Below are positions 23,033-46,492 of a stretch of 64,000 nt of DNA, in pieces. A program made the position numbers and the translations under genes. Under the pieces are notes generated by a model, which worked only from the letters and a program-made list of their open reading frames with translations, was not told the origin of the DNA and ran no database searches. Numbering within the stretch: the first letter of the stretch is position 1; each line of letters opens with the position of its first letter. The DNA lies in sequence record MW749003.1; one strand, given 5' to 3'.

Positions 23033-23045
23033 AAATATATATTAT
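23033..23045 (+). promoter_or_regulatory. Early promoter 13-mer
   Basis: Exact AAATATATATTAT. Confidence 0.7.
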
Positions 23046-23170
23046 AAGAATGTTGAAGTAAGTAAATATCAGAGTATATAGACCTTAATAAATCTCTAAA
23101 TAGGAAGCATACAACCACCTTGATGACGCTTCCGCTTCTTCAACATATAAAGATGGAGGAAGATAAACTC

Positions 23171-23218
23171 ATGTTTAAGGCATTAAGAACAGTATTGTCA
23201 ATCATTGGATTACAATAA
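23171..23218 (+). CDS. 15-aa micro-peptide MFKALRTVLSIIGLQ
   Basis: GGAGGA RBS 10 nt before ATG, downstream of an early promoter; not in the ORF track. Confidence 0.5.
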   Translation: MFKALRTVLSIIGLQ

Positions 23219-23392
23219 ATTGGGAACCCTAAAACTAGGTTTATATACTATAACGCCATTAGCGATTAAGTTCGCTAATGGCAAATAGGTGGTTATATTT
23301 TTTTATTTTTTTCTTTTCCTCCTTTGTTAACAAATAATTAATGCTAAATAAATATCATTTAATAATGATAGAAAGGAAAGGTTGAGAAACGA

Positions 23393-45322: not shown

Positions 45323-45370
45323 GGAGTTATTTTTTTTTATATTTTTTAAGTAAAATTAAAATATTATAAC

Positions 45371-45383
45371 AAATATATATTAT
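45371..45383 (+). promoter_or_regulatory. Early promoter 13-mer, overlapping a late motif at 45368-45379
   Basis: Exact AAATATATATTAT preceded by AAC. Confidence 0.7.
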
Positions 45384-45406
45384 ATAATTGATGGAGGTTT
45401 AAGAAA

Positions 45407-45790
45407 ATGAGTGAAGAAAAAGTTTTAGAAAATCAAGAAGAAGAAGTAGTAGAAAAAGAGGAAGTTGGAGAAAGTGAACAACCTCAATTAGAAGGTGATA
45501 TTGTACAATTTACAGTTGGAATTAATTCTAATCAAACGTATAACGTTAGATCAACAGTTGAAACTGGATTAGATCTAAGAGAATATATGCAAGCTATCGC
45601 AACTATTAAACTTAATACAATTATTAGCATCTTAAGTGGAAATGAAAAGAAATATGATAATTTGAAAATTTTTAAAGAATTTGAGAAAGAAACTTTATCA
45701 ATGGCTATTGATAAAATCTTGGAAGGTTTCTCTGAAAAAGAAATTCCTGATATTGAGAAAAAACAAATTAAAAAATTATTTGCTGAATAA
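45407..45790 (+). CDS. Hypothetical early protein with acidic N-terminus
   Basis: 127 aa, RBS GGAGG. Confidence 0.75.
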   Translation: MSEEKVLENQEEEVVEKEEVGESEQPQLEGDIVQFTVGINSNQTYNVRSTVETGLDLREYMQAIATIKLNTIISILSGNEKKYDNLKIFKEFEKETLSMAIDKILEGFSEKEIPDIEKKQIKKLFAE

Positions 45791-45970
45791 CATAAAATAT
45801 CAAGTATGGACAACAGTTCATACTTGATATTACTTAAACCTCCATTAAAATAAGTATAGCGGATATACTTATTTTATCTTTGTTAATTTCCAATACATCT
45901 GTCACTAATTATCTAAAATTTTTAGTAAATTAGTAACAAAAGATTGACTTATACTCAGGAGGTTAACATA

Positions 45971-46492
45971 ATGAAAAAGAGATTATTAGTTATTGCTGGA
46001 CCATCAGGCTGTGGAAAGAATTATATCACTGATTTATTAATTGGTACTTATCCAGAATTATTTCAACAGCTTCCACAATATACTACTAGGGAGAAGAGAA
46101 CACCAGATGAGAATACTTATCACTTTATTAGTAAGTCTCATTATGATGTAATTGAACATGCATTAATTGCTAAAACTGAAATTAATGGATACCATTACGG
46201 GACAGTTCCAAGCTTTGAAGAAAATAAAATCGGTATTATTATTGCTAATAAAAAAGGAATTGAGAGTTTGAGAGAATACCTTTCTAATAACACTGATAAT
46301 GTAGAGGTATTTTATTTGGGAATTGATTCGGAGCAACCAAAAGAGAGAGATGAAAGAACTAAAGAATATGTCGCAAATGAAAGAAAAGAATTAAAACCAA
46401 TTATTAATGATTGGTTAGTCAATATTCCACCCTATAATTATATTACTGCGGAAGATGTTTATCAATACTTAGAGAATAAAAAGTTTATTTAA
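45971..46492 (+). CDS. Guanylate-kinase-like NMP kinase
   Basis: IAGPSGCGK, YTTREKR, YHFIS, GYHYGT. Confidence 0.8.
   Translation: MKKRLLVIAGPSGCGKNYITDLLIGTYPELFQQLPQYTTREKRTPDENTYHFISKSHYDVIEHALIAKTEINGYHYGTVPSFEENKIGIIIANKKGIESLREYLSNNTDNVEVFYLGIDSEQPKERDERTKEYVANERKELKPIINDWLVNIPPYNYITAEDVYQYLENKKFI

Follow-up and report, generated by a model that had tools for sequence, protein, structure and literature searches.

Can a phage mRNA mask its own ribosome-binding site (RBS) by means of an exact antisense copy carried in its 3' UTR? This question is raised by a small gene in the stretch of 64,000 nucleotides that we analysed here, called the window in the following, which comes from Bacillus phage vB_BspM_Internexus, a member of the PBS1/AR9 group of giant (jumbo) phages. 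Phages of the PBS1 group have uracil DNA and encode two multisubunit RNA polymerases of their own, and at the locus in question the window is 99-100% identical to PBS1, AR9, and Goe21 (genus Takahashivirus). The ORF at 45407-45790 (+) is the homolog of AR9 g237, a "hypothetical protein" of the AR9 annotation, which also marks an "early promoter" immediately 5' of the gene; we therefore refer to it as g237 and to the guanylate kinase gene behind it as g238. AR9 coordinates were transferred to the window via a locus alignment of the AR9 record, and the resulting features are compiled in Table 1. Taken together, they describe g237 as a monocistronic unit in which early and late promoters overlap, the leader of 17 or 28 nt contains a strong SD, and the 3' UTR is composite and about 90 nt long.

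Table 1. Features of the g237 locus in window coordinates.
Feature	Position	Strand	Details
Late (non-virion RNAP) promoter AACA-N6-TA	45368..45379	+	Start A45379, 28-nt leader; AR9 Table S3 TSS 204058; consensus PMC5312081
Early (virion RNAP) promoter AAATATATATTAT-N6-G	45371..45390	+	Start G45390, 17-nt leader; AR9 annotation and Table S2 TSS 204069
5' arm of the predicted long-range helix = ribosome-binding site	45388..45403	+	Perfect 13-mer 45391-45403; GGAGG core 45393-45397
g237 homolog, 127 aa	45407..45790	+	ATG 45407; ORF translation, AR9 annotation, phrog_29179
Hairpin 1	45796..45831	+	16 bp including one G-U, loop AACA, -19.0 kcal/mol, without U-tract
3'-UTR anti-SD	45833..45845	+	Exact complement of 45391-45403; CCTCC 45839-45843; pairing runs to 45848
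Hairpin 2 and U-rich tail	45846..45890	+	Hairpin 45846-45876, 13 bp, -10.3 kcal/mol, one G-C pair
Third inverted repeat, overlapping the g238 late promoter	45900..45938	+	19-nt arms, 84%; hairpin in the predicted fold of the read-through RNA
g238 late promoter AACA-N6-TG	45935..45946	+	Start G45946; AR9 Table S3 TSS 204622
g238 (guanylate kinase) SD	45958..45964	+	ATG 45971; alternative partner of the anti-SD core, 7 bp, -12.1 kcal/mol

The sequence ATGGAGGTTTAAG at 45391-45403 has its exact reverse complement, CTTAAACCTCCAT, at 45833-45845, as found by sequence reading and by a repeat finder. This confirms the central observation of the initial annotation, and the same applies to the claimed extension with one G-U: the helix grows to 16 contiguous bp (45388-45403 with 45833-45848) by the pair G45390-U45846 and the A-U pairs 45389/45847 and 45388/45848. 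Beyond these 16 bp follow an A/A mismatch and then two more A-U pairs, which compete with hairpin 1. The copy was also correctly placed between two hairpins, whose size was underestimated at 12 bp each (Table 1). The 14 nt that link them consist almost entirely of the anti-SD and are unpaired at P 0.5-1.0 when the isolated 3' UTR is folded. Hairpin 1 contains four G-C pairs and lacks a U-tract, whereas hairpin 2 has only one G-C pair and a U-rich tail, and hairpin 2 is the more terminator-like of the two. Neither passes a terminator scan, which is designed for the intrinsic rho-independent type and may not fit the phage RNA polymerases. An origin of the two hairpins by tandem duplication was considered and rejected, as their similarity is not significant (p 0.25). 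Similarly, a promoter for a separate sRNA from the 3' UTR was rejected, because the 3' UTR contains neither a match to AACA-N6-TA/G nor a listed TSS. No Rfam family matches the RNA of the g237 locus. On the minus strand no ATG, GTG, or TTG lies 5-10 nt past the GGAGG copy, in agreement with the initial annotation; the first ATG follows only after 17 nt, and the copy is therefore not the RBS of a minus-strand gene.

How unusual is such a match? The 13-mer pair is restricted to these two sites in the window, and likewise in the complete AR9 genome. Perfect inverted repeats of this length are as such not rare in DNA with 28% GC: about 14 independent cases, spaced 50-1500 nt, were counted in the 64 kb, nearly all of them pure A/T. 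As a control, the RBS of each gene (-28 to +3) was compared with the 130 nt after the stop codons of other genes, that is, with non-self pairs. Runs of at least 13 turned up once among 4160 control pairs of the window and six times among 11441 of AR9, which corresponds to 0.15 expected among 287 self pairs. With the further demand that the run include the SD core, 2 control pairs out of 82,082 were left (2.4e-5 per gene), corresponding to 0.007 expected per genome. g237 is the sole SD-covering self match among the 287 AR9 genes, and its RBS/3'-UTR duplex of -23.3 kcal/mol lies in the 0.1% tail of the controls. Only five of these genes carry a sense-strand CCTCC in the first 100 nt behind the stop codon. 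As a class, the AR9 self pairs are no stronger than the controls (Mann-Whitney p 0.71, 287 genes). With 120-nt upstream windows one further strong self match was found at AR9 225738-226292. We rejected it as a second case, since there an HNH endonuclease ORF is closed by a 14-bp helix with structured and G+C-richer flanks, and this helix is probably an intron feature. The g237 match is thus real and uncommon, with the degree of its rarity hanging on the SD condition, which is post hoc, and being weighed down by the scan of many windows, which favours rare coincidences.

A locus at 23 kb had been taken together with g237 as a sign of a recurring RNA timer for early, possibly toxic genes. This locus comprises a very short hydrophobic ORF (23172-23218), a hairpin, the motif CCTCC at 23318-23322, and, at 23033-23045, an early promoter with G23052 as predicted start. 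Folding predicts that its SD is bound by CUUCUUC of the upstream leader and not by the downstream CCUCC, and the locus was therefore rejected as a second g237-type design, the predicted SD partner being local and upstream. As g237 stands alone among 287 genes, the self pairs are unshifted, and the 23-kb locus is predicted to fold otherwise, the idea of a recurring timer is not supported.

The transcription of g237 can be read from AR9, where early promoters have the form AAATATATATTAT-N6-G and late promoters the form AACA-N6-TA/G, the last base being the start (PMC5312081). Both motifs overlap 5' of g237. The early start, AR9 204069, is G45390 of the window, one nucleotide 5' of the 13-mer, and is listed as "secondary" with a step height of 3, whereas the late start, AR9 204058 or A45379, is "primary" with a step height of 3550 (Lavysh et al., 2017, PMC5312081). 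During AR9 infection the FPKM of g237 climbs from 129 at 5 min to 2210 at 20 min and 18724 at 40 min, the latter being the fourth highest protein-coding value in the part of the expression table that runs through g289 (PMC5312081); since the AR9 libraries are strongly 5'-biased, FPKM values of short genes are inflated, that of g237 included. Consequently, g237 is not the early gene it was initially taken for, it is a continuously expressed, late-dominated gene, and its RNA is among the most abundant late mRNAs. The adjacent g238 has a late start at AR9 204622, which is G45946 of the window, and no early promoter, and its FPKM of 237 at 5 min exceeds the 129 of g237 (PMC5312081). This implies early read-through across the 3' UTR of g237. 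g238 transcripts that begin at the late promoter are free of the anti-SD, because their start site is downstream of it.

In folding predictions for the late transcript (45379-45882) the 5'/3' helix is part of both the MFE and the centroid structure. Pair probabilities of 45391-45403 in the full-length RNA are 0.96-1.0 with the early or the late 5' end, and barring the linker from pairing costs 16 kcal/mol of ensemble energy with both 5' ends. The initial claim that the finished mRNA folds back on its own SD is thus supported as a prediction with a probability of about 1, and the silencing that was derived from it would be a consequence of this fold. In an RNA ending at 45838, the G's 45393-94 of the SD are unpaired (P 0.83-0.96), and the other bases of the RBS are engaged only with 45606-45613 of the coding sequence, in a weak A-U helix that ribosomes would open. 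For a read-through RNA of 1.1 kb the probability of the g237 helix falls to 0.53, because AACCUCC also pairs with the g238 SD; accordingly, in the fold of 45785-46010 the nucleotides 45837-45843 pair with 45958-45964 in MFE and centroid, with 7 bp and -12.1 kcal/mol compared to 16 bp and -23.1 kcal/mol for the g237 arms. A mechanism can be assumed from these predictions as follows. In transcripts that continue beyond hairpin 1, the linker would pair with 45388-45403, and the resulting 16-bp helix would stack between the hairpins, close the mRNA into a panhandle, and bury GGAGG. As this helix (-23 kcal/mol) is far stronger than a 6-bp SD/16S contact, binding of the 30S subunit to the finished RNA should drop, and since the helix is located at or near the 5' end, it should also alter how 5'-dependent RNases reach the RNA. 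If the 3' end lies right behind hairpin 1, either from the outset or through trimming, the RNA would be open and translatable, and in read-through RNA the anti-SD would be split between the SDs of g237 and g238.

The RNA data from AR9 infections are assembled contigs of the 2017 AR9 libraries and not reads, so the depths given here do not quantify 3' ends. In library X1 a single contig (45609-46105, depth 597) runs across the element, which is also covered by a contig of library X2 (45809-46377). In X2, the assembly graph breaks at 45809/45838 with a decrease in depth from 537 to 191 (2.8-fold), and there is no break past hairpin 2. Since the libraries were poly(A)-tailed, the branch at 45838 fits RNA 3' ends at 45835-45838, which is after hairpin 1 and inside the anti-SD, and many g237 RNAs may therefore end past hairpin 1 without the CCUCC core. 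A-tailed ends were also found at 45407 (true end 45403-45407), at the edge of the 5' arm, and the two groups of ends, 45403-45407 and 45835-45838, are at the contig level within one nucleotide of a 2-nt staggered cut of the helix. The break in X2 and the A-tailed ends could reflect RNAs that are terminated or trimmed at hairpin 1, or a helix that is cleaved.

To what extent is the element shared by relatives? Word-based searches matched the PBS1 group alone, and a metagenome scan with the g237 protein for covariation gave no further sequences. An exhaustive HMMER search identified eight distinct distant homologs of 117-194 aa with 27-40% amino acid identity, encoded on contigs from AR9-like phages (L003-L013). 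Several of these loci share the gene order DUF7487 gene, g237-like gene, guanylate kinase, RNase H, and the overlapping promoter motif AACAAATATATATTAT recurs 5' of the homologs in L003, L005, and L006. All eight homolog 3' UTRs have a single hairpin 3-10 nt past the stop codon followed by a T-run, and the anti-SD or any CCTCC is absent from all of them; the duplexes between their RBS and 3' UTR range from -4 to -14 kcal/mol, compared to a control mean of -10.6. Hairpin 1 of g237 occupies the position of the relatives' terminator and is similar to the hairpin of L003 (shuffle p 0.02), with the T-run lost. As hairpin 1 is at the ancestral terminator site and the U-rich tail is found on hairpin 2, the linker together with hairpin 2 can be regarded as a novelty of the PBS1 lineage. 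Within the PBS1 group we compared nine sequences, which are about 99% identical. Both arms are identical in AR9, PBS1, Internexus, and four food-fermentation metagenome contigs; with all carriers ~99% identical, this conservation says little and covariation has no power. A metatranscriptome contig diverging at 45762 (L034) was excluded as possibly chimeric. Goe21 has seven substitutions in 70 nt (45791-45860), compared to ~1% divergence elsewhere. Three of them are in loops, one converts a G-U pair of hairpin 1 into A-U, one affects its outermost base (45796), one is just past the stop codon (45791), and C45833 to A cuts the perfect match to 12 nt and is uncompensated. Judged from these sequences the hairpin stems look constrained, and the uncompensated change at its edge indicates that the anti-SD is not preserved beyond the level of the surrounding sequence.

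Two natural mRNAs and one engineered system offer themselves for comparison. [quoted passage not shown] However, the g237 3' UTR is much shorter, its perfect 13-mer is located between two hairpins, the mRNA is that of a phage and made by phage RNA polymerases, and an effect of the pairing is predicted only. In hbs of B. subtilis, 14 nt of full complementarity between 5' and 3' UTR (-19 kcal/mol) are located just 5' of the terminator, and the interaction was confirmed by compensatory mutations (PMC5737220). The layout of g237 is of the hbs type: the mRNA is small and very abundant in the same host cell, and about 14 nt of leader/3'-UTR complementarity lie beside a putative terminator hairpin, the 3' arm 45833-45848 abutting hairpin 2. 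The 5' arm of hbs overlaps an RNase Y site 5' of the SD and modulates decay, whereas the 5' arm of g237 (45388-45403) is the SD itself. Of an hbs-like influence on RNase Y or RNase J1 at the g237 leader, the A-tailed ends near 45403-45407 and 45835-45838 give a hint at most. Gill et al. (2025) showed that in B. subtilis engineered 8- to 12-mer anti-SD-like sequences more than 450 nt away pair with the RBS in vivo, reduce the mRNA half-life from 11.2 to 1.7 min, and lower the protein level, with one 3'-UTR site being effective, and that natural genes are depleted of distal anti-SD-like sequences; in the aprE 3' UTR of their reporter, anti-RBS 8-mers were without effect when a hairpin stood on either side (PMC12697547). 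g237 resembles this system in its predicted SD/anti-SD pairing across several hundred nucleotides of one mRNA; in contrast, the sequences of Gill et al. were engineered 8- to 12-mers, and the 8-mer without effect has the g237 layout. With distal anti-SDs effective and the two-hairpin 8-mer null, this precedent cuts both ways.

It had been suggested that the fold-back is an inhibition of the hok/aapA type and serves a possibly toxic early gene. In the type I toxin-antitoxin systems hok/Sok and aapA/IsoA, a 3' element pairs with the translation-initiation region and 3' trimming opens the mRNA. As a type I toxin module, g237 would withhold translation of a toxic early product up to the moment of 3' processing. 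It resembles these systems in the predicted 5'/3' pairing, which would hide the SD in the full-length RNA, and in the possible 3' ends just past hairpin 1, which would remove the anti-SD. However, the predicted gp237 (127 aa, pI 4.55, GRAVY -0.59) has a maximum 19-aa hydropathy of 1.05 and no membrane segment, and by its sequence is soluble, acidic, and hydrophilic. Its model comprises a disordered, acidic N-terminus of 32 residues, a beta-hairpin, and three helices, with a pLDDT of ~90 for residues 60-127. Pfam gave nothing for gp237, PHROGs the unknown-function family phrog_29179, a PDB profile search only a spurious designer-repeat match, and the Atlas only unnamed viral clusters. Moreover, g237 lacks a small (<60 aa) hydrophobic toxin and a leader ORF, its RNA is late-dominated and highly abundant, the gene is kept beside guanylate kinase and is syntenic with nucleotide-metabolism genes in the relatives, there is no second case in the AR9 genome, and g237 is not among the genes listed with antisense RNAs in the AR9 dRNA-seq study (PMC5312081). 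Nothing points to a toxin, and a toxin module is very improbable. Slightly less probable still is an element acting at the DNA level, either as the terminal inverted repeats of a cassette that moves or inverts, or as the relic RBS of a minus-strand gene. The 19-bp arms that flank g237 (17 of 19 identical as DNA) would suit such a cassette; against it, distant relatives have the gene at the same syntenic place without the repeat, flanking direct repeats are missing, the orientation is the same in 9 of 9 PBS1-group sequences, and the minus strand has no start codon at RBS distance. A better candidate, although also unlikely, is g238 as the main target, whereby AACCUCC would pair with the g238 SD in early polycistronic read-through RNA and g238 would be translated chiefly from the transcripts starting at 45946. 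The early read-through of the 3' UTR, the pairing with the g238 SD in MFE and centroid, and the decrease of the g237 helix to P 0.53 in the 1.1-kb RNA are in favour of this. However, the 7 bp are far weaker than the 16 bp with the g237 RBS, the eight flanking matches to the g237 RBS are left unexplained, and relatives with the g237-gmk synteny do not have the element.

The best reading is in our view that g237 belongs to the class of icaR-type cis-acting 3'-UTR anti-SDs with an hbs layout, and that its element arose only in the PBS1 lineage. We tentatively favour, with somewhat less than even confidence, that this lineage-specific element masks the RBS of those transcripts that reach hairpin 2. 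The match and its rarity, the predicted energies, the starts mapped in AR9, and the RNA coverage of the element stand as results, while a helix in vivo and an effect on translation or decay would follow from the model. Nearly as likely is that the match is neutral, a coincidence or a by-product of mutation in a 3' UTR that evolves fast, generated by chance or by template-switch-like copying, shielded and costless, and without selected function. In favour of this, and against a conserved mechanism, are the lack of the element at the eight distant homologous loci, its occurrence in just one of 287 genes, and the inert two-hairpin 8-mers of B. subtilis (PMC12697547). A neutral origin is also favoured by the 0.15 cases expected per genome without the post hoc SD condition, by the frequency of perfect 13-mer inverted repeats in A/T-rich DNA, by the substitution hot spot in the Goe21 3' UTR, where the anti-SD is not spared, and by the picking of rare coincidences in a many-window scan. 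On the other hand, the SD-conditioned control rate is as low as 2.4e-5 per gene, the match fills the linker exactly, the g237 helix has 13-16 bp instead of the 8 nt of the reporter, its 3' arm is 430 nt from the RBS instead of 997 nt, and the hbs interaction beside a terminator hairpin does form in vivo (PMC5737220). The very high abundance of late g237 RNA sits poorly with decay driven by the anti-SD. It is further conceivable, though with low probability, that the two hairpins are a switch point: RNAs with a 3' end right behind hairpin 1, formed by termination, trimming, or cleavage, would be open and translated, whereas those reaching hairpin 2 would close into the panhandle, be masked, and perhaps be cut by RNase III. 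The 3' end, chosen by the RNA polymerase type or by processing, would then determine how much g237 protein is made from this highly abundant late mRNA, which would be a hok-like activation by 3' processing outside of toxin-antitoxin systems.

A narrow literature search on transcription, promoters, and terminators of AR9/PBS1 gave no description of the g237 3' UTR. If the helix forms in vivo, it would, as far as we found, be without a described precedent as an anti-SD in the 3' UTR of a tailed-phage mRNA and, with icaR and hbs as its only forerunners, the third natural interaction between 5' and 3' UTR in mRNAs of the Firmicute type. The host is tractable, as decay enzymes and reporter methods already exist. 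In g237 a very abundant mRNA keeps a perfect anti-SD in the one context, between two hairpins, that was reported to be harmless. If the element is neutral, it would be a calibration case, showing that a 13-nt perfect complement of an RBS can persist in a 3' UTR without function; if the helix forms, g237 would provide a natural test of the avoidance of distal anti-SDs in B. subtilis (PMC12697547).

In the 3' UTR of g237, the gene of the 127-aa acidic protein (ORF 45407-45790), Goe21 differs from the window at seven of 70 nucleotides (45791-45860), compared with two of 384 in the ORF, which makes this 3' UTR a substitution hot spot of Goe21, where the stems are preserved and the loops have changed most. 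An RNA contig from a food-fermentation metatranscriptome (L034) is near-identical to g237 along its alignment to window 45405-45761, past which it is divergent and then carries an ORF resembling a methyltransferase gene; either the assembly of this contig is chimeric, or the g237 3' UTR is absent from a natural variant. At the other end of the transcript, the first ~100 nt (window 45379-45487) reach 30-100 times the depth of the gene body in the AR9 libraries, and A-tailed RNA 3' ends lie at 45407, 45421, 45436, and 45457 in these libraries; depth and ends together are explained by short 5' fragments or else by a bias of the libraries.

Three further loci are of note (see table). Between two virion-protein genes, an early-promoter motif drives a unit of ~270 nt (window 23033-23345) that also contains T-runs and in whose predicted fold an upstream CUUCUUC is the partner of the SD. 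This unit could represent an early gene for a small peptide or RNA, one that lacks a CDS annotation. Downstream of g237, the inverted repeat at the promoter of the guanylate kinase gene g238 may be a DNA site for a regulator or an RNA hairpin formed upon read-through. In the AR9 genome piece L029, a perfect 14-bp complement brackets the ORF of an HNH-type endonuclease, lying 32 nt before its start and 4 nt after its stop, and the flanks of the ORF are structured and G+C-richer; the complement looks like an intron helix that closes an ORF-bearing loop.

Features at 23 kb, at the g238 promoter and at the AR9 HNH locus
Feature	Position	Details
Early-promoter motif	23033-23045	predicted start G23052; promoter annotated here in AR9
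Leader of 23-kb unit		~120 nt
SD GGAGG of 23-kb unit	23156-60	
Hydrophobic ORF of 23-kb unit	23172-23218	15 aa
Hairpin of 23-kb unit	23253-23283	
Sense CCTCC of 23-kb unit	23318-22	
Inverted repeat	45900-45938	19-nt arms (84%); overlaps g238 late promoter
g238 late promoter	AACA 45935-38	start G45946
HNH-type endonuclease ORF	L029 5738-6292 (AR9 225738-226292)	minus strand; outside window

Table S3 of AR9 lists a secondary late start at window 45311 (AR9 203990), where AACA-N6-TA is found at the end of the preceding gene g236. Since this start falls within the g236 terminator region, some g237 transcripts may have a ~95-nt leader with part of the g236 terminator hairpin. Directly upstream of g237, the late and early motifs overlap, with AACA fused to AAATATATATTAT (window 45368-45390). 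This overlapping arrangement is kept 5' of the g237 homologs in four contigs of distant metagenomic AR9-like phages (L003, L005, L006, and L009), and this conservation of the motifs suggests that dual early/late expression is of old standing in the g237 family.
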